Part shown: one piece after another, positions 5,162 through 62,750 of the stretch | Numbering within the stretch: position 1 is the first letter of the stretch | Layout of the letters: each line of letters begins with the position of its first letter | NCBI RefSeq assembly: GCF_030028105.1 | Contig: NC_092374.1 | Span: 178,584,057 to 178,648,056 of the forward strand | Direction of reading: 5' to 3' | From: Mobula birostris | Lineage: Eukaryota | DNA: 64,000 nucleotides | Made by a program: the position numbers and the translations under genes | Notes under the pieces: model-generated | Seen by the model: only the letters and a program-made list of their open reading frames with translations | Database searches by the model: none | What the model was told of the DNA's origin: nothing

Positions 5162-5241
5162 TGGGAGCCGGGGAGCCTCGTGGTGCAGGTCCTTTGCTGG
5201 GGCTGATGGCGACACTTACGATGATGATTAAAGTGGTGTAG
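5162..5241 (+). CDS. Gene A, terminal coding (membrane-anchor/GPI-signal-like) exon; exon continues as UTR to 5277 or 5281
   Basis: The first AG after a ~63-nt AG-free stretch is 5160-5161. Phase-1 reading gives (V)GAGEPRGAGPLLGLMATLTMMIKVV-TAG(5239-5241). Homologous to 19777-19853 on the minus strand. Confidence 0.72.
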
Positions 5242-5362
5242 AGGAGCAGCAAGGAGAGAGTCAAGACTTTAGTGCAGGTGGGTAAACACGCAGGTCCTTT
5301 CACTAATCCTGCTTGCTGTCACAGTATTGCTCAACCAATCTCTTCTCGTTTTCCTTTTGCAG

Positions 5363-19552: not shown

Positions 19553-19776
19553 ACTAAGCTTGCTGAGGTGTGCAGTCACTCATCAAAAAAACGTGTTTGA
19601 AGCTGGACCCTGTGTTCAGAACTGTGCTTGAGTTAGAGCCGAATGCTGATCTGCAAAGGAGAAAAGAGAGGAGATTGAATGTACAGTCTAATACTGTCAC
19701 AGCAAGCAGGTTTAACAAAGGCATCTGTATGCTTACCCACCTCCAGTGACGCCTTGGTTCTCTCCTTGCTGCACCT

Positions 19777-19853
19777 CTACATCACTCCAAAGATTATCGC
19801 AAACACAGTCATCAGCCCCAACATAGGACCTGCACCATGGGGCTCACCAACTC
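19777..19853 (-). CDS. Gene B, terminal coding (membrane-anchor/GPI-signal-like) exon; exon continues as UTR to 19741 or 19737
   Basis: Acceptor ctttacttggtggacag|GA; (G)VGEPHGAGPMLGLMTVFAIIFGVM-TAG; donors GAG|gtgggt or TGG|gtaagc. Confidence 0.8.
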
Positions 19854-22800
19854 CTGTCCACCAAGTAAAGATCGGTAAATGTATAAATTATTTTATTATT
19901 GTCACCAGTTACCAGGTACAGTGGAAATACATGGTTTGCATTCCGTCCATACAAATCATTACATCAGGATATTAAGGTTGTACAAGGGAAATCAATAACA
20001 GAATGCAGAGTAATGTATTACTTTTACAGAGGATGTGTGGTGCTAGCTGGCACTAGGATGCAAGACCATTAAAAGTTAGATTGTGAGGTCAGATGCCTAT
20101 CTTACTATGTTTGGGGACCACTCAATTTTCTCACAGGAGCACGACAGAAGTGTTCATTGATCATTGTAGTACATGCCTTCAGGCTTTTGTATCTGTGCCT
20201 GATGGGAGTCGGGAGAAGTGGGGCGGGGGGGGAGCGCGGGGTGCTGGGGAGGGTAGTCCTATGTGGATAGTATTGGAAGATAGGAGAATGGAAGGTTTTT
20301 GAGGAAGGAAGGATGTCATTAGGATGGAAAGGATGCAGAGGAGATTCACAAAGATGGTGCCAGGAATGGAATGCTTGAGATATAAGGAGAGATAAGATAG
20401 GCTGGGATTATTTTCCTGGAGTGTAGGGGGCTGAGTTATAGAGAGAGGTATATAAAATTTTGAGGGGCATAGAGAGAGTGCACAATAATTTTTCAGGGCT
20501 CCTGATGGTATAGGTTTAAGTTAAGAGAGAAAAGATGTAACAGGAACCTGAGTGGCAACATGATGGTCAATTTATGGGTGCCAGAAGAAGTGGTTGAGGC
20601 AGACAAGTTAGCATCTTTTAAAAGATACATCCACCAGTACATGGATCTGAAGGGTTTAGGGAGATATGGGCCAGGATAAATGGGACTTCTTTGAACCGGA
20701 ATCTTGATCGACAAAGGTGTGTTGGGCTGAAGGGTCTGTTTCTCTGCTGCAGAATTCTACGAATCTATGACAATCAAACACCCAACAGCCAGGCAGTGAC
20801 CACTTGACAGTCAGGTCTTCCCCACAGTCCCAATTGCTTCTTAGTTGTTCTTTCTGTTGAGTTCTTACTATATTTCTTTGACCAACAGCTCAACTGCTTC
20901 TGTAACATCTGGTGAGCAGAAGGAACAGATTTAATTCGAGTGATAAAAGAGCACAGTAAATAATAACTTCCAAAATGGAAATGGGATATGTTCTTGGAAT
21001 TAAGAAATTTTCAGAGGTGTGTGAGAAGGAGTGGGGCTACTTGAGCAAGTCATTCAAAGTAGAGGACAAGGTGGTTAAGATAGCCTACAGGATGCTGGAT
21101 TTCATTGATTAGGACATAGAATTCAAGAGAAGGGAACTTATGGTGCAGCTTTATGGTGGAGATTCTTGATTAGGTCTTTCAAATTTGTAAATAGGGTGGT
21201 GAAGGAAGTGTATGAGATACCAATTATCAGTGCATAGAATACAAGGGCATGGGAATTATGGTACAGCTTTATAAAACACCGGTGAGGCTACATTCTGAGT
21301 ATTGTTTACAGTTCTGGTCACCAGAGCAGAGGAGAGATGTGATTGCATTGGACAGAGTGCAGAGGAGATTCGCTGGAATGTGGCTCAGATGAAATGGGAA
21401 GAGAGAATGGCTACACTGGTTTTGTTTTCTTTAGACGGGAGGAGACTGAGGATGGACCTGATGGAGTTATACAGAATTATTAGGGGTGTAGATAGGAAAC
21501 ACATAGAAAATGTTGGAAGAATTTTTAAAAATATATATTATTTCTGTTTTTGCACTATTTTAAAATCTGTTCAATATACATATATATAATTACTGTAGTT
21601 GATTTACTTACTTGTTTTATGTTTTTTCTATATTATCAAGCATTGCATTGTTCTGCTGCTGCTAAGTTAACAAATTTCACAACAGATGCCAGCAACAATA
21701 AACCTGATTCTGATTCTGAAGAGTGCTACAGGTTTTACTTGCTGCAGTTTATGCTTCCACTTCATGTGTTTGCTTGAACAGTAGTAAACCCTTCCCCATA
21801 GTAAAGGTGCCTATAACTCGACGTAGGTTTAAGATAATGACTAAGAGGTTTATAGAGAATCTACAGATGAATACTTTCACCAAGGGCGTGTTGGAGTTGG
21901 GAATAGACTGCCTGAGGAGATGGTGGAGGCAGAAACCGTCATAATTTTCAAGACGTACCTAGATGAGCAGTTGAATCATTAGGTTAAAGAAGGGGACGGG
22001 CCAAGTGTTTATGAGAACTAGAGGGTTTGCATGAATCAGACAGGCCGAAGAGCTTCCTTCTCTGCTGCACATGAGCCACCACAGGCAGAATGAAGCAAAT
22101 TCTGTACCGTACGATGACCTACCTCCCTTCGCCTTTGGCAGGCTGCTGTGCTCGACATGACAAGCATAGATGTTCGGGTCGTTGCCCTGCAGCTCAATGA
22201 CTAGTTCCATCCAATATGTATCATTGTAGTTTGGTAGCACCGTCACCTTGTAGCCCTCAGAGACAACCTGCCCATTCTTCAGCCAAGTAGCCTTGATAGC
22301 TCGGGGGTAGAAGGGAGTGATGATGCACGACAGACTCTCGCCTTCAGTAGCTGTTGGCCTCCTTGTCAACACCTGAGTCTTTGGAGCAACTGGGGAAGAA
22401 TCAAAAATTATGTCACCACCTCAACACAGGCTGATGATACCTTACTGTTATAGACTGAAGTTACAGTGTTCAATGTTGGGATTACTCTCACATCCTTCAC
22501 TGCCTCAGAATGTGATCTGCCTCACTATTACACTCACCATCTAATCTGAAATCAGCCTCCCCAGCCCAAGCTCATGCAGACTACAGACAGAGATTACGTT
22601 CATTCATCGGACAGGTCCAGATCAAGGTCACAGGCACTGTTCCCAATCCAACTGTAGTGCAATATCCCAAATTCAGATCATCCTCAAACTGCAAGATGGA
22701 GAATGCCCTCAGCACAGCAGTGGTGATCAGAAAGTCCCTCACTGCCCCAGACTGGGAGATCAGTCAATGTCTCCATTTGGGAGCGCCCTCACTCAAAGAT

Positions 22801-25800
22801 TCAAAGTAGATTAATTTCCAAATTGTTTATACAGAATACAACTCTGAGGTTTACCCTCCGATGCAGCGAAGGAACAAAGAGGCACCAAGGAACCCGTTCA
22901 AAGAAAACATCAAGCACCCAACATGCAGAGAGAGAACAGATTGCACAAACAGCAAAAACTGAGCTAGCAACACAGAGAATATCAAACATCGAAGCAGGGG
23001 TATTTTTGTTCTTAATTGTCCATTCCTTATCTGTTAGGGCATCATAGTGTACTGAGAATGACTCCAGGGGCAGTGTCTCATACTGTGTGTGAGATGTGAG
23101 TATTCTGGGAGACATCCAGTCTCTCGGATAAACACATCTGCACCAGGTGCGTCAAGCTGCGGCTCCTCAGAGAATGTGTTAAGGAACTGGAGCTGCAGCT
23201 CACTGACCTTAGCTTCATATGGGAGAAAGAGGAAGTGATAGATAGGAGCTACAGGGAGGTAGTCACCCTTGGTTTCAGGAGATTGGTAAATGGGTGACTG
23301 TCCGGAGAAGGAGGGGAGATGCTCAGCCAGTGCAGAGTACACCTGTGGTCATACCCCTCAATATAAATGTAACACTTTAGATACCGTTGAAGGGGACAAC
23401 CTACCGGGGGTAACCACAGTGACCAGGTCTCTGGCATTGAATCTGATGCTGTGGCTCAGAAGAGCAGAGAGGTGAAGAAGACTGCAGTGTTGATAGGAGA
23501 TTCCATAGGCAGAAGAACAGGGACAAGATTCTGTGGGCACGATGGAGACACCCAGGTGGTATGTTGCCTCCCAGTTGCCTGGATCACGGATGTCTCGGAT
23601 CAGGTCCATTGCATTTTCAGGAGGGAGGGTGAGCAGCCAGAAATCTTGGTGCATCTTGGCACCAATGAAATGGGTTGATAAGTTGAGGAGGTCCTGAAGA
23701 GAGATTTGAGGGAGCTGTGTAGAAAGCTGTAAAACAGGACCCCAGTGTAGTAATCACTGGATTTCTGCCCGTGCCACGTGCCAGTGAGGGTAAGAATAGT
23801 ATGATTTGGCAGCTGTATGTGTGGCCAAGGAATTAGTGGAGAGGTCAGGGGTTCTCTTCTGGGTATGGCCTGTACAAAAGGGACAGGTTACACCTGAATC
23901 CAAGGGGGCACAATATCCTTGCATGCAGGTTTGCTAGAGTTGTTCAGGAGGGATTAAACTAATTTGACATGGGGATAGGAGCCTGAGTGATAGTGCTGAG
24001 GATGAGGTAGTTGGTTTACAAATGGAGGCAGTGTGTAATGGGACTCCTAGCAAGGAGAGGCTGATGATAGAGCACAATTGTAATCAACAGGATGAGTTGC
24101 AATGTAAAAAGTGGACAAAATCGAAAATGGTGAATACAGGACTAAAGATGTTATATTTGAATGTGTGCAGTATATGGAATAAGGTCAATGAACTTGTAGC
24201 ACAGTTACAGACTGGCATGTATGATTTTGTGTGTATTCGCATTGAAGGATACACATTGTATCAAAAGGGTAGGGAGATGTGGAGGCATTGCTCTGTTGGT
24301 AAAAAATGAAATCAAATCATTAGAAAGGTGATGTAGGGTCAGAAGATATTGAATCATTGTGGGTAGAGCTAAGGAACTTCAAGGGTAAAAAGACCCTGAT
24401 GAGAGTTATATACAGATCCCTAAACTCTAGTAAGGATGTGGTCTACAAATTACAATGGGAGATAGAAAATGCATGCCAAATGGGCAATGTTACAATAGTG
24501 GCGGGGAATTTCAATATGCAGGTAGATTGGGAAAATCAGTTTGTGCTGGATCCCAAGAAGTGGAATTTCTAGAATGCTTGCGGGATGGCTTTTTAAAGCA
24601 GCTCATGGTTGAGTCCACTGAGGTATCAGCTATTCTGGATTGAGTGTTGTGCAATGAACCAGAATTGTTTAGAGAGCTTAAGGTAAAGGTACTCTTAGGG
24701 GTAAGTAATCATAATATAATAGAATTCACCATGCAATTTGAGAAGGAGAGCTAAAGTCAGATATATCAGGATTACAGTGGAGTAAAGGGAATTACAGAGG
24801 CATGAGAGAGGATCTAGCCAAAATTGCTTTGAAAATAACAGTGAAAGGGATGGTGGCAGAACATAAATGGATAGAGTTTCTGGAAGCAATTCAGAAGGCA
24901 CAGTGTATATACAACCCATAGAGGAAGATGTATTCTAAAGGCGAGATGACACAAGGTAGGTGGCTAACGAGAAGTCAAAGCAAACATAAAAGCCAAAAAG
25001 ATGGCATATAATAGAGCAAAAATTAGTGGGAAATTAGAGAATTGGGAAACTTTTAAAACCCAGCAGAAGGCAACTGAAAAAATCATTAAGAAGGATAAGA
25101 TGGAATATAAGAGTAAGCTAGCCAATAATAAAGAAGATGCAAACAGTTTGTATGGATAGATAAAGTGTAAAAGAGAGGTGAGATTGGATTTCAGACTGCT
25201 GTAAAATGATGCTGGAGAGGTAGTAATAGGGGACAACAAAATAGTGGATGAAATGAGGAAGACACTAGCAGTATGCTGGAAGCTTGAGTGTCGGGGAGCA
25301 GGTGTGCGTTAAGTTGCCATTACTAGACAGATGTTTCTTGGGAAAATGAAATGTCTTTAGGTCACCTGGACAGATGGTGTACCTGCTAGGATTCTGCAAG
25401 AGGTGGCTGAAAAGATTATGGAGGCATTAGTAATGATCTTTCAAGAATCTTTAGATTCTGGAATGGTTCTGGAATATTGGAAAATTGCAAATATCTCTCC
25501 ACTCTTCAAGCAGGGAGAGACACAGAAGAAAGGAAACTATAGGCCAGTTCGTCTGACCTCAGTTGTTTGGAGTTGATTGTTCAATGTGGGACTTTGGGGT
25601 ACTTGGAGGCACATGATAAAATAGGACGTAGTCGGCATAGTTTCTTTAACGGAAGATCTGTTGGAATTCTTTAATAAAATAACAAGCCGGATAGACAAAG
25701 GAGAATCAGTGGATGTTGTGTACTTGGATTTTCAGAAGGCCTTTGACAAGGTGTGGCATAGGTAGAACAAGGAAAGAGGTCCTAGTCATAGTCATAGTCA

Positions 25801-28800
25801 TAGTCATACTTTATTGATCCTGGGGCAAATTGGTTTTCGTTACAGTTGCACCATAAATAATAAATAGTAATAGAAATAGTAATAGTAATATTACTATTAG
25901 TAAATAGTAAATAGTAATAGTCATAGAAATAATAAATAGTAATAGAATAGTAATAGAAAATAGTAATAAGTAGTTAAATAGTAATATGTAAATTATGCCA
26001 GTAAATTATGAAATAAGTCCAGGACCAGCCTCTCGGCTCAGGGTGTCTGACCCTCCAAGGGAGGAGTTGTAAAGTTTGATGGCCACAGGGAGGAATGACT
26101 TCCTATGACGCTCTGTGCTGCATCTCAGAGGAATGAGTCTCTGGCTGAATGTACTCCTGTGCCCACCCAGCACATTCTGTAGAGGATGGGAGACATTGCC
26201 CAAGATGGCATGCAACTTAGACAACATCCTCTTTTCAGACACCACTGTGAGAGAGTCCAGTTCCATCCCCACAACATCACTGGCCTTACGAATGAATTTG
26301 TTGATCCTGTTGGTGTCTGCCATCCTCAGCCTGCTGCCCCAGCACACAACAGCAAACAGCAAATTCCCTTCTACTGAGGGAATTTGAGCAACTAGGGACT
26401 AAATTAAAATGCAGAACAGAAAAGGTGGTAATCTCTGGATTACTACTGAGCCATGAGCAAATTGGCATGGGGTTTAGAAGATTAGAGAGTTATATGTGGG
26501 GCTGAAGGATTGGTGTGGGTGGAGTAGGTTTGATTTTGCAGGAAATTGGCACCAGTATTGGGAAGGAGGGAGCTGTACCAATGGGACAGGCTCCAGCTGA
26601 ACTGTGATGGGACCTGGCTGCTCGTGAATCGCATAACCAGGGCTGTGCGTAGGGCTTTAAACTAAATTGTAGGGGGTGGGTTTAGTAGGGGGAATGGGTT
26701 CAACAGATTAGAAATGTATAGATAAAGTAAAAGAGAAAACTGTGGATGAAGATAATGAAAAATCAAAAGATAAAAAAGAGAAAAGTAAGAGTGGAGTAAA
26801 GAAAAGACAAGTTCAAAAGAGAAAAAGATTACAAGATTTTCAAAGCACAATGAGTGAAATGGCACTTTATCTGAATGCCCGTAGTATTCAAAATAAGGTC
26901 AGTGAACTTTTGGCACTAATCACTACAAAGGGGTATGATTTCATGGGCATTACAGAATTGTGGTTGCAGGGTGGAGAGGATTGGGAAGTGAATATCCAAG
27001 GATATCAGGTAATATGGAAGGATAGACAGGAATGTAAGGGAGGTGGGTTAGCGGTCTTAGTTAAGGATGAGACCAGGGTGATCATGAAAGACGATATAAG
27101 ATCTAATGAGCAGAATTTTGAATCCATCTGGGTAGAGATTAGGAATAGAAAAGGGAAATAATCACTGGTGGAAGTTTTCTATCAACCACCGAATTATAAT
27201 ATTACGGTCGCACAGGCAATAAACAGACAAATATCTGTGGCATGTAAGAATGGAACAGCAGTTGTTATGGGAGACTTTAACTTGGGTATAGATTGGGTGA
27301 ATCAAGTTGATGAAGGCAGTCTTAAGGAGGATTTCATAGAATACATCCATGATGGCTTTCTTGAACAACATGTCACTAAACCTACAAGTAAATGTGCTGT
27401 CTTAGCTCTGGTCCTGTGCAATGTATCAGGTAAAATTAGTTATCTTGTAGTTAGGGATCCTCTTGGAAAGAGTGATCACAGTGTGATTGAGTTTCTCGTA
27501 CAAATGGAGGGCGCAATAGTTCGATAGAAAACTAGTGTATTACTGTATGCCTAAACAGTGGAGACTACAATGGGATAAGGGAGGATTTGGCTTGTGTAGA
27601 CTGGGAACACAGACCATATGGTGGGACGGTTGAGGAACAGTGGAAGACTTTAAAAGAGATTTTTCACGGTGTTCAACAGAAGTATATTCCAGTTAAAAGT
27701 GGGGAGCAAGTAAGTTAGCAAGGGTGGGAAATGAAAAAAAGTATCAAACTAAAAGCTCGTTTGTATAAATTTGCCAAGAGTAGTGGGAAAATGCAAGATT
27801 GAGAAAACTTTAAAAAGCAACATAGAACCACTAAGCGAGCAGCGAAGGAAGGGAAGATAGACTACGAAAATAAACTAGCACAAAATATAAAAGCAGATCA
27901 TAAAAGTTGTTATAATTATATAAAGCAGAAAAGGGTGGCTTAAGTGAACATCGGTCCCTTGGAAGACGAGAAGGGGAATTAATATTGGGGAATGAGGAAA
28001 TGACAGAGGCTTTAGATCTACGTTGTGTCGGTCTTCACAGTGGAGGTGGAGGGCACGTCTAACATGCCAAAGACAGATGTTATGGACGCAATGGGAGGAC
28101 GAAATGGCAGAAGTTATAGTAGAGGCTTTGGTGATAGTTTACCAAAATAGAACAATAGAGTTGGGGCTAATGTATTAGCATGGATAGAGGATTGGTTGAC
28201 TAATAGAAAGAAGAGAGTTGGGATACCTGGGTGCTTCTCTGGTTGGCAGTCAGTGGTGAGTGGTGTGCCATTGGGGTCTGTGCTGGGGCTGCAACTGTTC
28301 ATGACATACATTAACGATCTGGAAGAGAGGACTGAGTGTAGTGTATCTAAGTTTTCGTAAAGTATGGAAGCATCTTGAGCCTTGTCAAAGGAACGAAAAG
28401 TAATCCAGGAAATTATAGGCCAGTAAGTTTAACGTCGGTAGTAGGTAAGTTATTGGAGGGAGTACTAAGAGACAGAATCTACAAGCATTTGGATAGACAG
28501 GGACTTATTTGGGAGAGTCAACATGGCTTTGTGCATGGTAGGTCATGTTTGACCAATCTATTGGAGTTTTTCGAGGAGGTTACCAGGAAAGTGGATGAAG
28601 GGAAGGCAGTGGATATTGTCTACATGGACTTCAGTAAGGCCTTTGACAAGATCCCGCATTGGAGGTTAGTTAGGAAAATTCAGTCGCTAGGTATACATGG
28701 AGATGTGGTAAATTGGATTAGACATTGGCTCGATGGAAGAAGCCAAAGAGTGGTGGTAGAGAATTGCTTCTCCGAGTGGAGGCCTGTGACTAGTCGTGTG

Positions 28801-31800
28801 CCACAGGGATCAGTGTTGGGTCCATTGTTATTTGTCATCTATATCAATGATCTGGATGATAATGTGGTAAATTGGATCAGCAAATTTGCTGATGATACAA
28901 AGATTGGAGGTGTAGTAGACAGTGAGGAAGGTTTTCAGAGCCTGCAGAGGGACTTGGACCAGCTGGAAAAATGGGCTGAGAAATGGCAGATGGAGTTTAA
29001 TACAGACAAGTGTGAGGTATTGCACGTTGGAAGGACAAACCAAGGTAGAACATACAGGGTTAATGGTAAGGCACTGAGGAGTGCAGTAGAACAGAGGGAT
29101 CTGGGAAAACAGATAGAAAATTCCCTAAAAGTGGCATCACAGTTAGATAGGGTTGTAAAGAGAGCTTTTGGTACATTGGCCTTTATTAATCAAAGTATTG
29201 AGTATAAGAGCTGGAATGTTATGATGAGGTTGTATAAGGCATTGGTGAGGCCGAATCTGGAGTATTGTGTTCAGTTTTGGTCACCAAATTACAGGAAGGA
29301 TATAAATAAGGTTGAAAGAGTGCAGAGAAGGTTTACAAGGATGTTGCCGGGACTTGAGAAACTCAGTTACAGAGAAAGGTTGAGTAGGTTAGGACTTTAT
29401 TCCCTGGAGCATAGAAGAGTGAGGGGAGATTTGATAGAGGTATATAAAATTATGATGGGTATAGATAGAGTGAATGCAAGCAGGCTTTTTCCACTGAGGC
29501 AAGGGGAGAAAAAAACCAGAGGACATGGGTTAAGGGTGAGGGGGGAAAAGTTTAAAGGGAACATTAGTGGGGGCTTTTTCACACAGAGAGTGGTGGGAGT
29601 ATGGAATGAGCTGCCAGACGAGGTGGTAAATGCGGGTTCTTTTTTAACATTTAAGAATAAATTAGACAGATACATGGATGGGAGGTGTATGGAGGGATAT
29701 GGTCTGTGTGCAGGTCAGTGGGGCTAGGCAGAAAATGGTTCGGCACAGCCAAGAAGGGCCAAAAGGCCTGTTTCTGTGCTGTAGTTTCTATGGTTTCTAT
29801 GGTAATATGGTCTACGCAGGAACTCCTGACTCCTGAAAACTGCTGAATTGCATGTATTTTAAGGTGTAAAAGACCATGCTTGTGCTCACTTTAGCAGAGT
29901 CTTTTAGTGGGCTCTCCATGGTCATGTAAGTAAGTAATTAAACTGAATACTGGGGTCTGTGTCCTTGTTTAATCAGCAATAGTAAATTTCTGTGACACTC
30001 AGAGTAGAGGGGCATCCTTTTAAAAAGGAGATCAGGAAATATTTCTTGAGCCAGAGAGCAGTACATATGTGGAATTCGTTGTTACAGGCAACTTGGCAGC
30101 TGTGGAGGCCACATCTTTACTATATTTAAAGCAGAGATTGATAGATTCTGTATAGTCACGACATGAAGCGATACAGGGAGATGGCAGGACATTGGAGCTG
30201 TGAGGGATAATGGACCAGATGAAATGGTGGAGCTGACTCGATGGGCCAAATGGCCCCATTCTGCTTCTATATCTTATGGTTTTATCAAGTCTAGATGTAC
30301 TCAGTTTAGTTTAGTGCCTTGCCACTAGCCAAATGCTGGCCGCAGATTCAGTCTTCGCTGAAACGCCCAGTGCGCACTGATGCACCCTGATCAAACCACT
30401 TAGAAACAGGAAACAAAGGGTAACCAGAATCCAGAAATACATGAACCCTAAAGTCCCCCAAAAAGAGTCACAACCACGAGCCTCACCGATCAATCCCTGC
30501 ATTGTGGAACCCAAGCCTCCTGCACTTTCCTCCAACAGCAGCTAGTAAAAGGGAGAGGAATACCAGGCAAATGCGGCAGATGGCGCCAAATACCAGCCTG
30601 GCCTCCGCACTTGGCCTCGTCCACTTCAAACTTGCTCAACGCCTCAGCCAGAGAGAAGCAATGGAGCCAATTGTGGGCTTACAGTCCACCTCCAGGCCTG
30701 TAGCCCGTACGCTCCAATTAACTCACTGTTTCAAATTAGGAGATCCCTCATTACTGCAGGTTGGGAAACCCCTAACCATTTTGTTTTCGGAGCTCCTTCT
30801 CATTCCCATATGAGGAGATCCCTCTGCATCTCTGATTGGAAGCTTCCTTACTATCCAGATCTGGAGATCCCTCTCTGTCCCAGATTGGGAACACCATCAA
30901 TTTGTTAGATCATCAAATTGTTCAGTATCCTGATTCATGACAGCCCACACCATCTCGGTCTCAGAGCCCCATAATCGTCTCAGACTGAGGTATCCCTTAT
31001 GTTGCTGTATTGGGAGTTCCCTCACCATCGCAGGATGTTCCACTTGCCTTGCCTTTCCAATGCTTCTTTTCCAAGCTGAACAGCCCTTTGCAAATACCAA
31101 GTGCAGTTACTCTTCGATGCAGTCATGTCAGTGAATCTGAGTTGGCTCAATTGATCATTGAGCATTGCTGGGAAAAGAGCGCCAGAGCATTTCAATGTGT
31201 TCAAATCACAGCTGAACTCTCCGATATCCGGGACGTTGATTTTCAGAATCTCATTGACCGTATCTCCAGATTGTGTGCAGCTCCAGAGTGCCTGTATGTA
31301 GCTGAAGCCTGTAAATTACCAACAGATTAATTAACATTAATAGCTGAAGCTTCCAATACTAGATAATGGTCTGCTAAATACGTAAATGCTATGTGACTAA
31401 GAGGTGCACAAAGTAGTGGGTCACGGTCAGCGACTGTGTACAGTTAAGGCCAAGAGCATGGGGTGAAGTGTCCTATATAGAACATTTGTCAGTGTGTGGC
31501 ACAGATCACAGGGTCTCGAGGAATCAGTAATCAATGTGAGCAACTGTTCAAATGGCAGGGTGGGAGGGGAAAGTTTAAAGAGATTCAATTTGTCATTAAT
31601 GAATGGTAATGTTTTCAAACGTATAGTGAAAAGCATTCGGATTGGTTACATCACAGCTGGTAGGTAAACGCCAAAGCCCTGAAAGCCAAAAGGCTGCGAG
31701 GGTGCTGGATTCAACCAGGCCCATCACAGGCACAGCTCTCCCCATCATTGAGGACATCTTAATTAGCCAGAAAAAGTGGTTCACCTGAGGACTAGGAGAA

Positions 31801-34800
31801 ATTCAGAGTCCAGCAGAGGAGAACAAAGGGCTTAATTAGGAAGGGGAAAAAAGATTATGAGAGAAAACTGGCAGGGAACATAAAAACTAACTGAAAAAGC
31901 TTTTATAGATATGTGAAAAGAAAAAGATTGGTTAAGAGAAATGTAGGTCCCCTACAGACAGAAACAGGTAAATTGACTATGGGAAGCAAGGACGTGGCAG
32001 ACCAATTGAATAACTACTTTGGTTCTGTCTTCACTAAGGAGGACATAAGTAATCTTCCGGAAATAGTAGGGGACAGAGGGTCCAGTGAGATGGAGGAACT
32101 GAGGGAAATACATGTTAGTAGGGAAGTGGTGTTCGGTAAATTGAAGGGATTAAAGGCCGATAAATCCTCAGGGCCAGATGGTCTGCATCCCAGAGTGCTT
32201 AAGGAAGTTGTCCAAGTAATAGTGGATGCATTAGTGATAATTTTTCAAAACTCTTTAGATTCTGGGCTAGTTCCTGAGGATTGGAGGGTGGCTAATGTAA
32301 CCCCACTTTTTAAAAAAGGAGGGAGAGAGAAACCGTGGAATAATAGACCGGTTAGCCTGACATCGGTGTTGGGGAAAATGCTAGAGTCAGTTATCAAAGA
32401 TGTGATAACAGCACATTTGGAAAGCGGTGAAATTATCGGACAAAGTCAGCATGGATTTGTGAAAGGAAAATCATGTCTGACGAATCTCATAGAATTTTTT
32501 GAGGATGTAACTAGTAGAGTGGATAGGGGAGAACCAGTGGATGTGGTATATTTGGATTTTCAAAAGGTTTTTGACAAGGTCCCACACAGGAGATTAGTGT
32601 GCAAACTTAAAACTCATGGTATTGGGGGTAAGGTATTGATGTGGATAGAGTTGGTTGGCAGACAGGAAGCGAAGAGCAGGAATAAACGAGGCCTTTTCAG
32701 AATGGCAGGCCGTGACTAGAGGGGTACCGCAAGGCTCAGTGCTGGGATCCTAGTTGTTTACAATATATATTAATGACTTAGATGAGGGAATTAAATGCAG
32801 CATCTCCAAGTTTGTGGATGACTAAGAGGATGCAGGGTGACTTGGATAGATTAGGTGAGTGGGCAAATTCATGGCAAATGCAATTTAATGTGGATAAATG
32901 TGAGGTTATCCACTTTGGTGGCAAAAACAGGAAAACAGATTATTATCTGAATGGTGGCCGATTAGGAAAAGGGGAGGTGCAACGAGATCTGGGTGTCATT
33001 ATACACCAGTCATTGAAAGTGGGCATGCAGGTACAGCAGGCGGTGAAAAAGGCGAATGGTATGCTGGCATTCACAGCAAAAGGATTCGAGTACAGGAGCA
33101 GGGAGGTACTACTGCAGTTGTACAAGGCCTTGGTGAGACCACACCTGGAGTATTGTGTGCAGTTCTGGTCCCCTAATCTGAGGAAAGACATCCTTGCCAT
33201 AGAGGGAATAGAAAGAAGGTTCACCAGATTGATTCCTGGGATGGCAGGACTTTCATATGATGAAAGACTGGATCGACTAGGCTTATACTCGTTGGAATTT
33301 AGAAGATTGAGGGGGGATCTTATTGAAACATATAAAATATTAAAGGGATTGGACAGGCTAGATGCAGGAAGATTGTTCCCGATGTTGGGGAAGTCCAGAA
33401 CGAGGGGTCACAGTTTGAGGATAAAGGGAAGCCTTTTAGGACTGAGATTAGGCAAAACACAGAGAGTGGAGAATCTGTGGAATTCTCTGCCACAGGAAAC
33501 AGTTGAGGCCAGTTCATTGGCTATACTTAAGAGGGAGTTAGATATGGCTTTGTGGCTAAAGGGATCAGGGGGTATGGGGGGAAGGCTGGTACAGGGTTCT
33601 GAGTTGGATGATCAGCCATGATCATACTGAATGGCGGTGCAGGCTCGAAGGGCCGAATGGCCTACTCCTGCACCTATTTTCTATGTTTCTATGTTAGTTT
33701 GGATTCCTTAACCAACTAGAAAAGCCTTAATGAGACCCTAGATTATATTCTTCTCTCTCTCTAAATCTTGCACAAATATTGTTACATTTATTTTGTTGTA
33801 TGCCTTTGTACATGTGCTGGTTGTACATATTTATTTAAAATTGACTGCATGCTAACATGTCCTGTAATATACCATGCTGCTGCTGTAAGGCAGTAATTTT
33901 ATGGCATTTGTACCCTGTGTATGTCAGCCTATGATCAGAAATGAACTTGAGCTTGAACTTATGCGGAGTGCACAGTACAGAGATCACGTTGAAACACTGT
34001 GCAGTGCACAGTACTCTACGTACAAAGCAGGGGGCACATTGAAGGACTTTGTCAACATGTGGGTCGGAGCAGGGGCTCACAGTGAGAGACTGCGCTGTAC
34101 AGTCTGCGCTGAACCACGTCCACTGCAGAGAGTTACGGCGGAGAATTCTGAAAGCAACATGTTTGTATTCAGTGTCAATAAGCACAGAGTGTGCAACACA
34201 GCAGTTCTGGTCACTCTGTGACGGTGAGGCTTTGGAGTAGGTGCAGAAGATGCTTACCAGATGCTGCCTGGATTGGAGAGATTTGACCCACTTGGGCTGT
34301 TTTCTCTGTTTTAAAGTTGACAGCTGGTATTATTTTTCCATCAGTTGAAATGTCTAATACAAGAGGGCATGGAAAAGGGGGTATGTTCAATGGAGATGTG
34401 CAGGGTAAGTCTTTTCCAGAATAGCGTGTTCCTAAATTGTGCTTCCAGGGGTTGTGGTAGTAGCAGATACAAAGAGGGCGTTCAAGAAGCTTAGGCAAGC
34501 AGGACATGGACATTGTGTAGGCAGAAAGGATGAGATTAGTTTGGCATTTGATTATTAATATAATTAGTTCAGCAGAACATTTTGGGCCAAAGGGCCTGTT
34601 CCTGTGTTGTAGTGTTCTATGTTCTAATGCACGGAGTCCCCACACCAAATTAGATCTGGAAAGCGTCATTGTGGCAGGTGACTAGGTATGAGCCATGGAC
34701 ATCTTAGTTCCAACCATCCTAGACTGAAGCATCCCCAAGTCTGGAGTTGGGGAGTAGGCTTAGGATTAGAGTTTGAGCCAGGCAAAGCCTGTATAGACAG

Positions 34801-35650
34801 TGGGTTTGATTTTCACTGTTTCTCTGAAGAGGTCCGTGGGGAATGAGGACTGGATAATCAGTTTATTTTGAAGGGTCAGAACTTACCCAGAACTTACCCA
34901 GAATTCTTGTAATTGGAGTTAAGGAAGGTAGAGAGCAGAATGGAGATTTGAGAGATTTGAAAGACTTTAAGCTAGATACAACATAATCGGATCTAATAGA
35001 ACATCAAGATATTGGCAATATGCAAGTCACTGTGATACTCAAAGGGTAGTGGAGATCAAAGACACTCACTAATCAATGAGGTGAGTGGCTTCAGATATGT
35101 TGAGAGGAGCTCATGAAGCTGATCGGTTATTTCTTTCTGTTCTTTCCAGTAGTCGGTCGATAAGCCATCTGCGATCCACTGGTACTTGACTTCTACTTCA
35201 TGCAGTGTGTTGTCGTAGTAGTCTATCTGCAAGTCATCGAGCATCCCAATCCTGAAGAAAGCTGGCATTTCGGGAATGCTGATGGATTGGAAGTAGTAAT
35301 ATATCAAGCTGTGTGAGCCTGAGTAAAAGGACAGAGAGAGAGGAGTGTCACAAAACAACAAAGGATGCTCACAATTTATAAGGCACAAATTGGGAGTTTG
35401 ATGGCATACTCGCCACTTGAATGGATTAATACACATCCAAACAGACATCCTACTGGATCAGGCAGCACTCCCACCCCTCTTTATTAGCTCCCCAAACACG
35501 AGCAACCAACACTATGAAAACTTGCTTCACTGCTCTGGTCATTTACAAAATCCTAAGCAGATACTCACTGAAGCCAATCCAACAGAACAACCCAAACCCC
35601 AGCACGAAGGAGGTCAAGGGCAGCAGGGAAACAGGAGCACCAACTCCCAT
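19777..35650 (-). CDS. Gene B, complete non-classical MHC class I heavy-chain gene; join complement(35569-35650, 35070-35318, 31048-31308, 22123-22389, 19777-19853); 311 aa
   Basis: Exon lengths 82+249+261+267+77 = 936 nt = 311 codons plus stop. All introns are phase 1. Order is leader, alpha1, alpha2, alpha3, anchor. No internal stop. Confidence 0.88.
22123..22389 (-). CDS. Gene B, MHC class I alpha3 exon (267 nt)
   Basis: Acceptor ttcttccccag|TT, donor GGAG|gtaggt. About 89% nt identity to 105-380, with a 9-nt in-frame deletion near the 3' end. Confidence 0.93.
23030..25760 (+). mobile_element. Degenerate CR1 (ORF1 SGNH-esterase region, APE, RT start)
   Basis: AVLIGDSI...VCCLP....VHLGTNEMG (23451-23678), WVELRNFKGKKTL (24357), DFQKAFDKV-like end near 25730. 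Confidence 0.85.
25785..26370 (-). mobile_element. Rex1/Babar-type LINE 3' fragment with (catagt)n tail and an AT-rich (aatagt)n microsatellite at 25850-25990
   Basis: ORF 26006-26362 ends PLRCSTERHRKSFLPVAIKLYNSS; tandem repeats visible directly. Confidence 0.75.
26370..28360 (+). mobile_element. Degenerate CR1 (ORF1 end, APE endonuclease, RT pieces)
   Basis: ALYLNARSIQNK...GITELWL...WVEIRN (26742-27161), VMGDFNL (27168-27527). Confidence 0.85.
28385..29803 (+). mobile_element. Young 5'-truncated CR1 with an open 450-aa RT ORF, in gene B intron 3
   Basis: ORF 28375-29727 with YMDFSKAFDK, PQGSVLGP and FADDTK; tail tttctatggtttctatgg. Confidence 0.95.
31048..31308 (-). CDS. Gene B, MHC class I alpha2 exon (261 nt)
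   Basis: Acceptor taatttacag|GC; frame open: SFSYIQALWSC...NCTWYLQRAVQLGKEALERQ, with Q96/C101/C164 equivalents and the typical GKExLER end. Donor is CAAG|gcaagt (GC). Confidence 0.88.
31780..33693 (+). mobile_element. 5'-truncated CR1 in gene B intron 2
   Basis: ORFs 31913-32719 and 32782-33621; close relative of 53500-55457. Confidence 0.92.
35070..35318 (-). CDS. Gene B, MHC class I alpha1 exon (249 nt)
   Basis: Acceptor ccttttactcag|GC, donor ATTA|gtgagt. SHSLIYYY..F..IGMLDDLQIDYYD...QWI....DYW matches the class I alpha1 pattern (SHSLxY, G.vDD.Q...yD, W51, Y59-W60). Confidence 0.92.
35569..35650 (-). CDS. Gene B, leader (signal peptide) exon
   Basis: ATG in context ctataATGG; MGVGAPVSLLPLTSFVLGFGLFCWIGF is hydrophobic; donor TTCA|gtgagt is phase 1; 250-nt intron to alpha1. 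Confidence 0.82.
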
Positions 35651-35703
35651 TATAGGGTTGCTTCTAAGTCAGAGGCAAACATACTGGAACATAAGTCCAC
35701 CAT
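35650..35703 (-). promoter_or_regulatory. Candidate upstream ORF (17 aa) whose TAA overlaps the gene B ATG (TAATG)
   Basis: ATG GTG GAC...ACC CTA TAA/TG GGA; A at -3 and G at +4 for both ATGs. Confidence 0.4.
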
Positions 35704-38629: not shown

Positions 38630-41600
38630 GGTTTTAATGAGATCACTCCACATTTTTCTAAACTCTAGTGAGCCAGAGGTCGTGGTACATATAGGTACCA
38701 ATGATATAGGTAGGAAAAGGGGAGAGGTCCTGAAAGGAGAATATAGGGAGTTGAGAAAAAGGACTGCAAAGCTAGTAATCTTGGGATTACTGCCTCTGCT
38801 ATGCGACAGTGAGAGTAGGAATGCAAAGAGGTGGAGGATAAATGTGTAGCTGAGGGATTGGAGCAAGGGGCAGGGATTCAAGTTTTTGGATCATTGGGAC
38901 CTCTTTTGGCGCAGGTGCGACCTGTACAAAAAGGACGGGTTACACCTGAATCCTAGGGGGACCTATATCCTGGCGGGGAGATTTGCAAGGGCTATGAGTT
39001 GACTTTAAACTAGAATGGGTGGGGAGTAGGAATCAAATTAAAGAGACTAGGAGAGAGGAGGTTAGTTCACAAATAGAGAAACCTAGTAGACAGTGTGTGA
39101 GGGAGGATAGGCAGGGGACAGAGATCAGGAGCACTCAGACCAAAGATGTAGGGGACAAGGAAGAAAAAGAAAATAAATTTGTTTGCTCCATTAAGAGTAA
39201 AAAGAGAGTAGGAGGTGGAGAGTTTCTTAAATGCATCTATTTTAATGCTTGGAGCATTGTAAGAAAGGTGGATGAGCTTAGAGCATGGATTGATATCTGG
39301 AAATACGATGTTGTAGCTATTAGTGAAATGTGGTTGCAGGAGGGGTGTGATTGGCAACTAAATATTCCAAGATTTTGTTGCTTCAGGTGTGATAGAATAG
39401 GAGGGGCAAGAGGGGGAGGTGTTGCATTGCTTGTCAGAGAAAATATAACAGCGGTCCTCTGGCAGGATTGATTAGTGGACTCATCCAGGGAGGCTATTTG
39501 GGTGGAATTGAGGAATAGGAAAGGTGTAGTGACACTTATAGGGGTGTATTATAGACCACCTAATGGGGACCGAGAACTGGAGGAGCAAATTTGTAAGGAG
39601 GTGGCAGATATTTGTAGTAAGCACAAGGTTGTGATTGTGGGAGATTTTAATTTTCCACACATAGACTGGGAAGCCCATTCTGTAAAAGGGCTGGATGGTT
39701 TGGAGTTTGTCAAATGTGTGCAAGATAGTTTTTTGCAGCAATACATAGAGGTACCAACTAGAGAAGGGGCAGTGTTGGATGTCCTGTTAGGGAATGAGAT
39801 AGGGCAGGTGACAGAGGTATGTGGTGGGGAGCACTTCGGGTCCAGTGATCACAATACCATTAGTTTCAATATAATTATGGAGAAGGATAGTACTGGACCC
39901 AGAGTTGAGATTTTTGATTGGAGAAAGGCTAACTTTGAGGAGATGTGAAGGGATTTAGAAGGAGTGGATTGGGACAACTTGTTTTATGGGAAGTATGTAA
40001 TAGAGGAATGGAGGTCATTTAAAGGTGAAACTTTGAGGGTACAGGATCTTTATGCTCCTGTTAGGATGAAAGGAAAGGTTAAAAGTTTGAGAGAGCCATG
40101 GTTTTCAAGGGATATAGGAAACTTGGTTTGGAAGAAGAGAGGGATTTACAATAAATATAGGCAGCTTGGAGTTAATGAGGTGCTCGAGGAATATAAAGAT
40201 TGTAAAAAGAATCTTAAGAAAGAAATTAGAAAAGCTAAAAGAAGATATGAAGCAGCTTTAGCAAGTAAGGTGAGAATAAATCCTAAGGGTTTCTACAGTT
40301 ATATAAATAGCAAAAGGATAGTGAGGGATAAAATTGGTCCCTTAGAGAATCAGAGTGGATAGCTATGTACGGAGCCAAAAGAGATGGGGGAGATTTTGAA
40401 CAATTTCCTTTCTTCGGTATTCACTAAGGAGAAGGATATTGAATTGTGTAAGGTAAAGGAAACAAGAAAGGTAGTTATGGAAAGTATGATGATTAAAGAA
40501 GAGGAAGTACTGGTGCTTTTAAGGAATATAAAAGTGGATAAGTCTCTGGGTCCTGACAGGATATTCCCTAGGACCTTGAGGGAAGTTAGTGTGGAAATAG
40601 CAGGGGCTCTGACAGAAATATTTCAAATGTCATTAGAAACAGGGATGGCGCCGGAGGATTGGCGTATTGCTCATGTGGCTCCATTGTTTAAAAAGGGTTC
40701 TAAGAGTAAACCTAGCAATTATCGGCCTGTGAGTTTGACATCAGTGGTGGGTAAATTGATGGAAAGCATTCTTAGAGATGGTATATATAATTATCTGGAC
40801 AGACAGGGTCTGATTAAGAACAGTCAAAATGGATTTGCGTGTGGAAGGTCATGTTTGACAAATCTCATTGAATTTTCTGATGACATTACTAGGAAAGTTG
40901 ACGAGGGTAAAGCGGTGGATGTTGTCTATATGGACTTCAGTAAGGCATTTGATAAGGATCCACACGGAAGGTTAGTTAGGAAGGTTCAATCGTTAGGCAT
41001 TAATATCGAAGTAGTAAAATGGATTCAGCAGTGGCTGGATGGGAGATGCCAGAGAGTAGTGGTGGTTAACTGTGTGTCAGATTGGAGGACGGTGTGTAGT
41101 GGTGTGCCTCAGGGATCTGTACTGTGTCCAGTGTTGTTTGTCATATATACTAATGATCTGGATGATGGGGTGGTAAATTGAATTAGTAAGTATGCATATG
41201 ATACTAAGATAGGTGGCATTGTGGATAATGAAGTAGGTTTTCAAAGCTTGCAGAGAGATTTAGGCCAGTTAGAAGAGTGGACTGAAAAATGGCAGATGGA
41301 GTTTAATACTGAAAAATGTGAGGTGCTACATTTTGGTAGGACTAATCAAAATAGGACATATATGGTAAATGGTAGGGCATTGAAGAATGCTGTAGAACAG
41401 AGGGATCTAGGAATAATGGTGCATAGTTCCCTGAAGGTGGGATCTCATGTGGATAGGGTGGTGAAGAAAGCTTTTTGTATGCTTTATAAATCAGAGCATT
41501 GAGTATAGGAGTTGGAATGTAATGTTGAAATTGTATAAGGCATAAGTAAGGCCAAATTTGGAGTATTGTGTGCAGTTCTGGTCACCGAATTATAGGAAAG

Positions 41601-42110
41601 ATGTCAATAAAATTGAGAGAGTACAGAGGAAGTTTACTCAAATGTTGCCTGGGTTTCATCTCCTAAGTTACAGAGAAAGGTTGAACAAGTTAGGTCTTTA
41701 TTCTTTGGAGCATAGAAGGCTGAGAGGGGACTTGATAGAGGTGTTTAAAATTATGAGGGGGATTGATAGAGTTGATGTGGATAGGGTTTTTCCATTGAGA
41801 GTGGGGGAGATTCAAACAAGAGGACATGAGTTGAGAGTTAAAGGGCAAAAGTTTAGGGGTAACATGAGAGGGAACTTCTTTACTCAGAGAGTGGTAGCTG
41901 TGTGGAACGAGCTTCCAGCAGAAGTGGTTGAGGCAGGTACGATGTTGATGTTTAAAGTTAAATTGGATAGATATATGGACAGGAAGGGAATGGAGGGTTA
42001 TGGACTGAGTGCAGGTCGGTGGGACTAGGTGAGTATAGGAGTTCGGCACGGACTAGAAGGGCCGAGATGGCATGTTTCCATGCTATAATTGTTATATGGT
42101 TATATAGTTA
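38630..42110 (+). mobile_element. CR1, ORF1 C-terminus plus nearly full ORF2 broken by stops
   Basis: ORFs 38637-38849, 39019-39471, 39475-39948, 39964-40362, 40384-41181, 41221-41502 and 41558-42028 form colinear APE-RT. Confidence 0.95.
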
Positions 42111-60680: not shown

Positions 60681-62750
60681 CCGGGAAGGAATGGATTCTC
60701 AATATTCCTGGATTTCAGTGCTTTAAAAGGGATAGAGAGTGTGGAAAAAGGGGAGGAGGGGTGGCATTACTGGTCAGGGATACTATTACAGCTACAGAAA
60801 GGGTGGGTAATGTAGCAGGATCCTCTTTTGAGTCAGTTTGGGTGGAAGTCAGGAACAGGAAGGGAGCAGTTACTCTACTGGGGGTATTCTATAGGCCCCC
60901 TGGTAGCAGCAGAGATACAGAGGAGCAGATTGGGAGGAAGATTTTGGAAAGATGCAAAAATAACAGGGTTGTTATCATGGGTGACTTTAACTTCCCTAAT
61001 ATTGATTGACACCTGATTAGTTCCAAGGGTTTAGATGGGGCAGTGATTGTCAAAAGTGTCCAGGACAGATTCCTGTCACAGTATGTGGACAAGCCAACTA
61101 GGGGGAATGCCACACTAGATCTAGTACTAGGTGATGAAACGGGGCAGCTCACAGATCTCTCAGTGGGTGAGCATCTGGGGGACAATGACCACCACTCCAT
61201 GGCCTTTAGCATTATGATGGAAAAGGATAGAATCAGAGAGGACAGGAAAATTTTTAATTGGGGAAGGGCAAATTATGAGGCTATAAGGCTAGAACTTGCG
61301 GGTGTGAATTGGGATGATGTTTTTGCAGGGAAATATACTATGGACATGTGGTCGATGTTTAGAGATTTCTTGCAGGATGTTAGGGATAAATTTGTCCCAG
61401 TGAGGAAGATAAAGAATGGTAGGGTGAAGGAACCATGGGTGTCAAGTGAGGTGGAAAATCTAGTCAGGTGGAAGAAGGCAATATACATGAGGGTTAGGAA
61501 GCAGAGATCAGATGGGTCTATTGAGGAATATAGGGAAGCAAGAAAGGAGCTTAAGAAGGGGTTGAGAAGAGCAAGAAGGGGGCATGAGAAGGCCTTGGCA
61601 AGTAGGGTAAAGGAAGACCCCAAGGCATTCTTCAATTATGCGAAGAAAAAAAGGATGACAGGAGTGAAGGTAGGACTGATTAGAGATAAAGGTGGGAAGA
61701 TGTGCCTGGAGGCTGTGGAAGTGAGCAAGGTCCTCAATGAACACTTCTCTTCGGTATTCACCAATGAGAAGGAACTTGATGGTGAGGACAATATGAGTGG
61801 GGTTGATGTTCTGGAGCATGTTGATATTAAGGGAGAGGAGGTGTTGGAGTTGTTAAAATACATTAGAATGGATAAGTCCCCGGGGCCTGATGGAATATTC
61901 CCCAGGCTGCTTCAGGAGGCGAGGGAAGAGATCACTGAGCCTCTGGCTAAGATCTTTATGTTCTCATTGTCCACGGGAATGGTACCGGAGGATTGGAGGG
62001 AGGTGAATGTTGTCCCCTTGTTCAGAAAAGGTAGTAGGGATAGTCCGGGTAATTATAGACCAGTGAGCCTTATGTTTGTGGTGGGAAAGCTTCTTAGAGA
62101 TAGGATCTCTGGGCATTTAGAGAATCATAGTCTGATCAGGGACAGTCAGCATGGCTTTGTGAAGGGTAGATCGTGTCTAACAAGCCTGATAGAGTTCTTT
62201 GAGGAGGTGACCAGGCATATAGATGAGGGTAGTGCAGTGGATGTGATCTATGTGGATTTTTGTAAGGCATTTGACAAGGTTCCACATGGTAGGCTTATTC
62301 AGAAAGTCAGAAGGCATGGGATCCAGGGGAGTTTGGCCAGGTGGATTCAGAATTGGCTTGCCTGCGGAAGGCAGAGGGTCATGGTGGAGGGAGTACATTC
62401 AGATTGGAGGATTGTGATTTGTGGTATCCCACAAGGATCGGTTCTGGGACCTCTACTTTTCATGATTTTTATTAACGACCTGGATATGGAAGTAGAAGGG
62501 TGGGTTGGCAAGTTTGCAGATGACACTAAGGTTGGTGGTGTTGTAGATAGTGTAGAGGATTGTCAAAGATTGCAGAGAGACATTGATAGGATGCAGAAGT
62601 GGGCTGAGAAGTGGCTGATGGAGTTCAACCCAGAGAAGTGTGAGGTTGTACACTTTGGGAGGACAAACTCCAAGGCAAAGTACAAAGTAAATGACAGGAT
62701 ACTTGGTAGTGTGGAGGAGCAGAGGGATCTGGGGGTACATGTACACAGAT
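60680..62750 (+). mobile_element. CR1 ORF2 fragment (APE-RT), truncated by the next insertion
   Basis: ORFs 60593-61009 (3' part) and 61043-62750. Confidence 0.92.

Follow-up and report, generated by a model that had tools for sequence, protein, structure and literature searches.

On the strength of its sequence, we identify a locus in Mobula birostris, the giant manta ray, as a non-classical MHC class I gene of the UFA lineage that is intact and has an existing annotation. The window, i.e. the whole 64,000-nt stretch of DNA that was analysed, contains two genes of the UFA type and otherwise only retroelements. We consider it very probable that the gene studied here belongs to a tandem set of at least five UFA paralogs, and that its product is a class I heavy chain that would be paired with beta2-microglobulin and a hydrophobic, non-peptide ligand, would end in a tail-less or GPI-anchored C-terminus and would receive its leader from a remote exon of the family type. 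The RefSeq model of the gene, misnamed "MR1-like", can now be placed in the UFA lineage.

Exon structure, transcripts and the first exon

Five minus-strand exons, all in phase 1 and all with AG acceptors, splice in the model into a 936-nt frame coding for 311 aa (Table 1). The coordinates and frame of this model, proposed in a sequence-only reading of the window, were reproduced exactly, but the leader exon that it included gained no support and the intron between alpha2 and alpha3 requires a GC donor. From alpha1 through the anchor exon, 283 codons are open over four exons with intact splice sites; this part (residues 29-311) is 100% identical to RefSeq XP_072113437.1 (P0129), and the orthologue in M. 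hypostoma shares this structure at 91% identity. In Pfam searches, alpha3, which reads as a normal C1-set domain, was matched by C1-set at 3e-14 and alpha1 by MHC_I at 4e-6, under the cut-off, while neither alpha2 nor the anchor exon had a match. The retroelements that the same reading had seen filling the introns were recovered as LINE reverse-transcriptase and endonuclease ORFs, those of intron 3 including an RVT_1 domain (7e-36) at 28375-29724 and an endonuclease at 27168-27524.

Table 1. Positions in the window of the exons, introns and flanking sequence of the gene
Feature	Positions	Strand	Remarks
Leader-like exon, local	35569..35650	-	ATG at 35650; GTGAGT donor; phase 1; diverged homologue of the family leader
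alpha1 exon	35070..35318 (35318-35070)	-	83 codons; phase 1; AG acceptor; GTGAGT donor
Intron 2	31309..35069	-	3,761 nt; LINE reverse-transcriptase fragment at 31913-33621 (+)
alpha2 exon	31048..31308	-	87 codons; extra Cys pair; GC donor AAG/GCAAGT
Intron 3	22390..31047	-	8,658 nt; GC-AG; filled with plus-strand LINE fragments
alpha3 exon	22123..22389	-	Ig C1-set domain
Anchor exon	19777..19853	-	connecting peptide and 16-17-residue hydrophobic end; TAG at 19779-19777; without cytoplasmic tail
Post-stop sequence	19741..19776	-	reads as the start of a basic cytoplasmic tail (RCSKERTK...), then GTGGGT donor; conserved in the paralog at 5242-5277

The donor of alpha2 makes the intron that follows it a GC-AG intron; working GC donors have AAG/GCAAGT as their consensus. 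GT donors lying 4 and 22 nt downstream of the end of alpha2 were rejected, as they are out of phase and lead to a stop. Transcriptome-like contigs that match the gene exactly join alpha1 (35069-35150) to alpha2, skipping precisely intron 2, and an exact contig of 115 nt spans 31193-31307 in alpha2. This gene-exact RNA evidence amounts to only about 200 nt at a low depth of about 10, versus 40-75 for a P0125-like paralog, to which the better-covered contigs belong. Contig alignments end exactly at 31048, the GC donor, while the contig records themselves continue. No junction read was seen for the alpha2-alpha3 and alpha3-anchor junctions; the former is drawn from the RefSeq model together with the contig end points, and the latter from the RefSeq model. 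Spliced transcripts, by which the sequence-only reading had wished its gene to be judged, are represented at the alpha1-alpha2 junction by these transcriptome-like contigs, which run up to the GC donor; none of the contigs covers the local leader.

RefSeq gives both this gene and its orthologue in M. hypostoma a leader that is typical of the family and differs from the leader-like exon adjacent to alpha1 in the window. A tblastn search of the window with the RefSeq leader gave no match beyond the six residues APVSLL of this local exon. Since the gene extends over 50.4 kb, the RefSeq leader would lie some 34 kb farther upstream, beyond the window, and the mRNA would most likely start with this family-type exon; the orthologue in M. 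hypostoma covers the same 50 kb and possesses a complete family leader. The local exon is homologous to the family leader (APVSLL...C...G) but diverged, having lost the conserved MESW...SLCSVAGQQAG pattern. The stretch 35553-35700 has zero depth in five RNA-like runs though alpha1 and alpha2 are covered, and only DNA runs contain it; a motif scan upstream of the exon found no ISRE, X, Y or CCAAT boxes, and a LINE fragment lies about 450 nt upstream. Neither RefSeq isoform uses this exon, isoform X2 beginning at an internal Met, without a signal peptide. We consider that the local exon is probably not the one in use.

Conversely, the local exon, 250 nt upstream of alpha1, might be the true first coding exon and the 311-aa protein the actual product, with the remote RefSeq exon being an artefact of read mapping between near-identical paralogs. 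The exon offers an ATG, an open frame, a phase-1 GTGAGT donor and a hydrophobic core, lies at the usual short distance from alpha1 and retains recognizable homology to the family leader; the paralog P0125 extends over just 18.5 kb, which indicates that short first introns occur in the family. Moreover, the contigs with a family-type leader derive from a paralog (8 differences in 234 nt), and the remote exon of the RefSeq model may indeed be such an artefact. Nevertheless, an open frame of 27 codons is by itself weak evidence, and the missing RNA coverage, the RefSeq isoforms, the orthologue, the lost leader pattern and the upstream sequence described above all speak against the local exon. We regard its use as rather unlikely and infer that the gene takes the remote exon of the family type.

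The same observations bear on the proposal that the gene is a decaying or non-functional copy of the tandem array, with a degenerate first exon of its own and weak transcription. The divergence of the local leader, the low depth of the gene-exact contigs relative to the paralog, the isoform that lacks a signal peptide and the reliance on a non-canonical donor could all be read in this way. Against this, the four exons from alpha1 onward are open with intact splice sites, the orthologue is equal in structure, the gene-exact contigs are correctly spliced, the GC donor has the form of working ones, and a dN/dS of 0.26 was obtained for alpha3 against the alpha3 of the paralog. We consider decay very improbable, and retain the interpretation of an intact gene.

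Placement in the UFA lineage

Among solved structures, PDB 8GM8, entitled "shark nonclassical MHC class I, UFA" (nurse shark; P0146 is its sequence), is the best match for alpha1 (3e-15), alpha3 (4e-23) and the whole chain, and the sole PDB match for alpha2 (7e-8), in which both proteins have the motif C-D-x-x-T-x-x-C. The identity between the two is about 40% over the whole ectodomain, and 8GM8 is also the closest Foldseek match (E 4.6e-27, TM 0.75) of an AF2 model of the gene product (pLDDT 82.6). In a maximum-likelihood IQ-TREE analysis of 49 rows, the gene and 27 shark and ray proteins, including the nurse-shark UFA, form a clade with support of 100/100 and a stem of 0.82; a UGA-like group is its sister (100/99) in this careful tree, and the UAA-like sequences occupy a distant part of it. 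A quick tree of 59 rows gave the same result for the UFA clade. The gene belongs to the UFA lineage, to the exclusion of the other class I lineages.

The sequence-only reading was correct in describing the gene as intact, divergent and non-classical, with groove domains that are short, an additional Cys pair and a missing cytoplasmic tail. Its further view that these features match no recognized lineage, and may denote an uncharacterized one, does not survive: it had listed UBA, UCA, UDA and UEA and omitted UFA and UGA, and the gene nests in a described lineage that already has these features. The poor recognition of alpha1 and alpha2 by Pfam, the inconsistent RefSeq names across the family (MR1-like, CD1d-like, ZAG-like, HFE-like and Q7-like) and an additional 3-residue deletion in the alpha2 helix of the ray copies of the studied type might be adduced for a new chondrichthyan lineage or sublineage, but such a reading is refuted at the lineage level by the clade shared with nurse-shark UFA, the identity to the 8GM8 ectodomain and the clade-wide occurrence of the short alpha1, Cys pair and tail-less end, and we hold it to be extremely improbable. 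UEA, which had been considered since it is multicopy, was rejected on the grounds that the PDB title and the tree point to UFA; UEA is reportedly absent from rays. A literature search for a primary paper on UFA or UGA, or for mentions of 8GM8 and 9CH4, returned nothing relevant. UFA has been mapped to an MHC class Ib cluster together with UDA and UEA in a study whose supplement labels the genes only as 'MHC-Ib' (PMC10751288).

Among the matches, there is one UFA copy per shark species and there are at least five in each of Mobula birostris and Hemitrygon akajei. UFA has so far been called single- or low-copy, and the difference between one copy in sharks and at least five in mantas and stingrays is mildly new and may interest comparative immunologists. 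We tentatively put forward, as a plausible scenario, that in myliobatiform rays a single-copy CD1-like UFA gave rise to at least five diverged paralogs without tails, arranged in tandem and comprising two sublineages that predate the manta-stingray split, with copies of the studied type further shortening their alpha2 helix. This would represent a ray-specific diversification of lipid presenters analogous to that of mammalian CD1a-e, in the course of which the studied gene would have exchanged its original first exon for another, 34 kb upstream.

The groove, the membrane anchor and comparison with known systems

The sharks, skates and rays of the UFA clade have in common the short alpha1, the additional Cys pair and the hydrophobic C-terminus without a tail, i.e. 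the three supposedly odd traits are old, lineage-wide characters shared since the shark-ray split. The Cys pair is found in 22-23 of the 28 UFA-clade rows, with F/W at these positions in UGA-like rows; it lies in the alpha2 beta-hairpin and is capable of forming a disulfide. Of the conserved residues that fix the two ends of a peptide in classical class I molecules (Y7, Y59, Y/R84, T143, K146, W147, Y159 and Y171, by our own number mapping from an alignment that includes UGA-like and UAA-like rows), just the equivalents of Y7 and Y59 are kept: hydrophobic or neutral residues stand opposite 143, 146 and 147, a deletion removes the region around 159, and Ala occupies position 171. By this alignment, the classical UAA-type set is incomplete in the studied gene. 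At the level of the alignment, the alpha1 helix is shortened and Leu-rich, which together with the loss of the peptide anchors suggests a hydrophobic, lipid-binding groove. The predicted heavy chain would thus combine this alpha1 helix with an alpha2 platform bearing the extra Cys pair and a C1-set alpha3, pair with beta2-microglobulin and hold a hydrophobic, non-peptide ligand. UFA has been described as CD1-like (PMC10751288), and a review reports, as a personal communication, that UFA and UGA bind lipids, and that the shark UFA structure binds CD1d-like lipids (PMC12562908); the literature cited leaves orthology with CD1 unsettled.

Every full-length member of the clade terminates behind the hydrophobic stretch, and the tail-less hydrophobic end is present in 26 of the 31 listed rows, which come from sharks, skates and rays; the remaining five are two aberrant models, an isoform from Narcine, a Heterodontus sequence with an end of 10 residues, and the ectodomain from the PDB. 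The position of the TAG is identical in the window paralog, and the stop, to judge from the tail-like sequence behind it, is a nonsense codon of long standing, common to the whole lineage, in an exon that formerly encoded transmembrane and cytoplasmic parts. The C-terminus runs through G-V-G and E-P-H-G-A-G-P to 15 hydrophobic residues before the stop. Judged by eye, this is compatible with a signal for GPI anchoring, which comprises small residues at the omega site, a polar spacer of short length and a hydrophobic end of 12-20 residues with nothing after it. The chain would sit on the membrane via a GPI anchor or a tail-less one and, with either type, would be without the tyrosine sorting motif that directs most CD1 isoforms to endosomes. 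With a shared nonsense codon and a former tail that can still be read downstream of it, GPI-anchored or tail-less display of a putative lipid presenter becomes directly testable.

Of the known systems, nurse-shark UFA (8GM8) is the closest, being the best match for each domain and a member of the same clade, with an 83-residue alpha1, the Cys pair and loss of the anchors for the peptide C-terminus, and full-length shark UFA orthologues share the tail-less hydrophobic end; unlike 8GM8, the ray gene lacks three more residues, ahead of the Cys in the alpha2 helix. UGA (9CH4) is the sister clade and second-best PDB match in sequence (P0037 matches 9CH4 at 1e-138), but it keeps F/W at the sites of the Cys pair, the T/K/W and Tyr anchors, a longer alpha1, and a real transmembrane segment with a cytoplasmic tail. 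The classical shark UAA (6LUP) resembles the ray gene in its five-exon phase-1 layout, C1-set alpha3 and Tyr7 and Tyr59 equivalents, whereas the ray gene is without the conserved positions 84, 143, 146, 147, 159 and 171, has shorter groove domains and has no tail. Mouse Qa-2 (H2-Q7), a GPI-anchored class Ib molecule, is likewise a class I heavy chain with a truncated transmembrane exon and a short hydrophobic C-terminus, and NCBI names the Hypanus copy 'Q7 alpha chain-like'; however, Qa-2 binds peptides and arose recently in the mouse classical lineage, and GPI anchoring of UFA is a prediction. As for a specific relationship to CD1, Pfam gives only MHC_I and C1-set, no CD1 chain is among the top Foldseek matches, and Foldseek ranks structures of classical class I, YF1 and MR1 before CD1, the lipid-presenting class I-like family known from mammals, birds and reptiles. 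The likeness to CD1 lies instead in the proposed function, a hydrophobic lipid-binding groove (PMC10751288, PMC12562908), and, in the case of CD1a, in having no endosomal sorting motif, as in the ray gene.

Exon structure and transcription of gene A

Gene A is an intact class Ib gene of UFA, a nonclassical MHC class I lineage described from sharks. The five phase-1 exons put forward in the sequence-only reading could be reproduced exactly as a 936-nt, 311-codon frame on the minus strand, with introns of 250, 3,761, 8,658 and 2,269 nt. The retroelements it had reported in the introns are likewise present, as plus-strand LINE reverse-transcriptase and endonuclease ORFs (RVT_1, 7e-36) within the two long ones. 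Pfam recovers a weak MHC_I domain in alpha1 and a C1-set domain in alpha3, with no domain detected in alpha2. The alpha2 donor, absent from the earlier account, is AAG/GCAAGT (31046-31047, -), which makes the alpha2/alpha3 intron one of the GC-AG type in its consensus form. GT donors 4 and 22 nt past alpha2 were rejected, being out of phase and reaching a stop once spliced to alpha3.

Window positions of the gene A exons and of the retroelements upstream of alpha1
Feature	Position	Strand	Remark
Leader-like exon	35650-35569	-	ATG at 35650, donor GTGAGT
Alpha1 exon	35318-35070	-	part of spliced phase-1 frame
Alpha2 exon	31308-31048	-	part of spliced phase-1 frame
Alpha3 exon	22389-22123	-	part of spliced phase-1 frame
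Anchor exon	19853-19777	-	TAG at 19779-19777
Retroelements (LINE ORF2 copies, LTR element)	55797-58962	-	
	39019-42028	+	
	52745-55359	+	
	60593-63989		

An alpha1 query against 1.8 billion representative sequences matched proteins from rays and sharks, about 310-320 aa long, and follow-up searches recovered further ones. The RefSeq protein P0129 (XP_072113437.1, Mobula birostris) is 100% identical to the spliced model over residues 29-311, from alpha1 through the stop, which identifies the window as DNA of the giant manta ray. Over this stretch the exons were correctly assembled in the sequence-only reading, and gene A was already annotated, GC donor included; its M. hypostoma orthologue (P0150) is 91% identical.

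The RNA-like sequencing runs labelled M. birostris behave as transcriptomes, since they show zero depth on unique intron sequence and yield contigs that skip introns. Two contigs exact to gene A, of 197 nt (run X1) and 132 nt (run X2), contain the alpha1-alpha2 junction (35070-31308). In paralog contigs of 248, 363 and 1,059 nt the alignment to gene A ends exactly at 31048 while the records continue, as predicted by use of the GC donor and not the +4 GT. The alpha3-anchor junction is taken from the RefSeq model. Gene-exact depth is low for gene A (about 10), versus 40-75 for a paralog resembling the protein P0125. The transcript of this paralog is the best-covered one of UFA type in the RNA-like runs (35088-35321; depth 14-75 over X27, X2 and X3, against about 10 for gene A).

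Local and remote candidates for the first exon

P0129 begins with MESWSGPVSLLVTALSLCSVAGQQAG, a signal peptide typical of the family, whose coding sequence was not found anywhere in the window. RefSeq gives gene A a span of 50,372 bp versus 15.9 kb in the sequence-only model, which places the first exon about 34 kb upstream of alpha1, a few kb past 64000. The M. hypostoma P0150 gene spans 50,326 bp and has a complete family leader; that of P0125 spans only 18.5 kb. We consider this remote leader to be probably the first exon of gene A. Alternatively, the local leader-like exon could be the real first coding exon, and its homology to the family leader is recognisable (APVSLL...C...G). However, its sequence has diverged from that leader, nothing resembling a class I promoter module is present in the 650 nt upstream of it, and about 450 nt upstream there is a LINE fragment. 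In the RNA-like runs, which carry the same species label, the local exon has zero depth, and it is present in DNA runs only. On these grounds, together with the two RefSeq spans, we rate the local exon an unlikely candidate and favor the remote leader; the leader exon assigned from sequence alone is probably an error. Contigs with ...SLCSVAGQQAG at the 5' edge of alpha1 were rejected as evidence for a gene A leader: they differ from gene A at 8 of 234 positions and share the alpha1 end of P0125, and hence stem from the P0125-like paralog.

Retroelements fill nearly all of the 28 kb upstream of alpha1: LINE ORF2 is present in several copies, alongside an LTR element in which an RNase H domain was recognised (RT_RNaseH, 2.8e-23). 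A tblastn search turned up no class I exon relic there. A TATAA motif (35651-35656, -) overlaps the ATG of the local exon, and RefSeq isoform X2 (P0151, 267 aa) begins at a Met inside alpha1 (MPAFF...). Speculatively, transcription beginning shortly after that ATG would account for the start of isoform X2.

The UFA clade and its copies in rays

By sequence, the best solved structure is nurse-shark UFA, 8GM8_A (alpha1 3e-15, alpha2 7e-8, alpha3 4e-23, whole chain 6.5e-62), which is the sole real match for alpha2 and has the same extra Cys pair. It is also the structure closest to the ectodomain as modelled with AF2 (pLDDT 82.6; E 4.6e-27, TM 0.75). The entry, released in 2024, is titled "Crystal structure of shark nonclassical MHC class I, UFA"; 9CH4, released in 2026, has the same wording for "UGA". 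A careful IQ-TREE run on 49 rows places gene A in one clade with 27 proteins from sharks, skates, sawfish, electric rays, stingrays and mantas, among them the nurse-shark 8GM8 sequence (P0146); the clade has 100/100 support and a stem length of 0.82 changes per site. Its sister group includes P0037, which matches 9CH4 at 1e-138, while UAA-like sequences, matching the classical UAA structure 6LUP, fall elsewhere; a separate quick tree of 59 rows agrees. The suggestion of an uncharacterised lineage is accordingly not borne out, as the tree firmly places gene A inside a lineage that has been described before and shares its features.

The odd traits that had prompted it, a short alpha1, an extra Cys pair and no tail, are all present in gene A, but they characterize the UFA lineage as a whole. 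An alpha1 of 83 residues is common to all clade members, and the Cys pair, at residues 117 and 124 of the mature chain, occurs in 22-23 of 28 clade rows. The C-terminus directly follows 14-16 hydrophobic residues in 26 of the 31 rows listed (sharks, skates, rays); of the other five, one is the PDB ectodomain, two are aberrant models, one is a Narcine isoform and one is a Heterodontus protein with a shorter end. Gene-A-type ray copies have a further 3-residue deletion ahead of the alpha2-helix Cys.

UFA has been called single- or low-copy in a review (PMC12562908). Among the matches there is one UFA gene per shark species; in rays the number of distinct proteins is at least five for M. birostris, at least five for Hemitrygon akajei, at least three for Hypanus sabinus and two for Pristis. 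Two sublineages are older than the manta-stingray split. A second UFA-type gene in the window (alpha3 104-364, anchor exon 5165-5241, both +) lies tail-to-tail with gene A, 14.5 kb apart. Its alpha3 is 86% identical to that of gene A in protein and differs from P0122 at 3 of 86 residues; alpha3 dN/dS between gene A and this neighbor is 0.26, consistent with constraint. The anchor-exon acceptor is ACAG/GA in gene A, and the neighbor has GTGG/GA at that site; an AG 3 nt upstream would keep the frame and add one codon, which is missing from RefSeq P0122. In 231-aa RefSeq isoforms of gene-A-type copies from Hemitrygon and Hypanus (P0001, P0117, P0138) the alpha2 exon is skipped, giving leader-alpha1-alpha3-anchor; NCBI names these 'zinc-alpha-2-glycoprotein-like' or even 'class II DQ beta-like'. 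The M. birostris 'uncharacterized protein' P0152 (XP_072115050.1, 581 aa) is twice the normal length and clusters with the gene-B type at 90% identity; it may represent two genes fused in one model, or else an additional copy.

Tail loss and proposed function

The TAG is at the identical position in gene A and the window paralog, and behind it in both (19741-19776, -; 5242-5277, +) the basic start of a cytoplasmic tail is still readable. Next comes a GTGGGTAA donor, conserved between the two, and a TTTGCAG acceptor lies about 85 nt further along. Given the shared stop, with readable tail and donor behind it in both genes, the loss of the tail is due to an old nonsense codon and not a recent lesion; the remnant and donor look like a fossil tail exon boundary, now in the 3' UTR.

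The C-terminus of gene A runs from small residues through a 7-residue spacer with Pro to 15 hydrophobic residues and the stop, an order that by eye fits a putative GPI signal; alternatively, it would be a tail-less transmembrane anchor. As neither would provide a tyrosine sorting motif, we infer that the ligand would be loaded along the secretory pathway or on the surface instead of in late endosomes. The heavy chain would probably pair with beta2m, and its groove would probably hold a hydrophobic ligand.

Both the UFA lineage and the annotation of gene A were already known. UGA has F/W where the UFA clade has its Cys pair. Of the classical peptide-terminus anchors, gene A keeps the Tyr7 and Tyr59 equivalents alone in the alignment, under our own mapping of the numbering. 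The UFA binding region has been called CD1-like (PMC10751288), and structure and mass spectrometry, cited as a personal communication, point to lipids like those of CD1d (PMC12562908).
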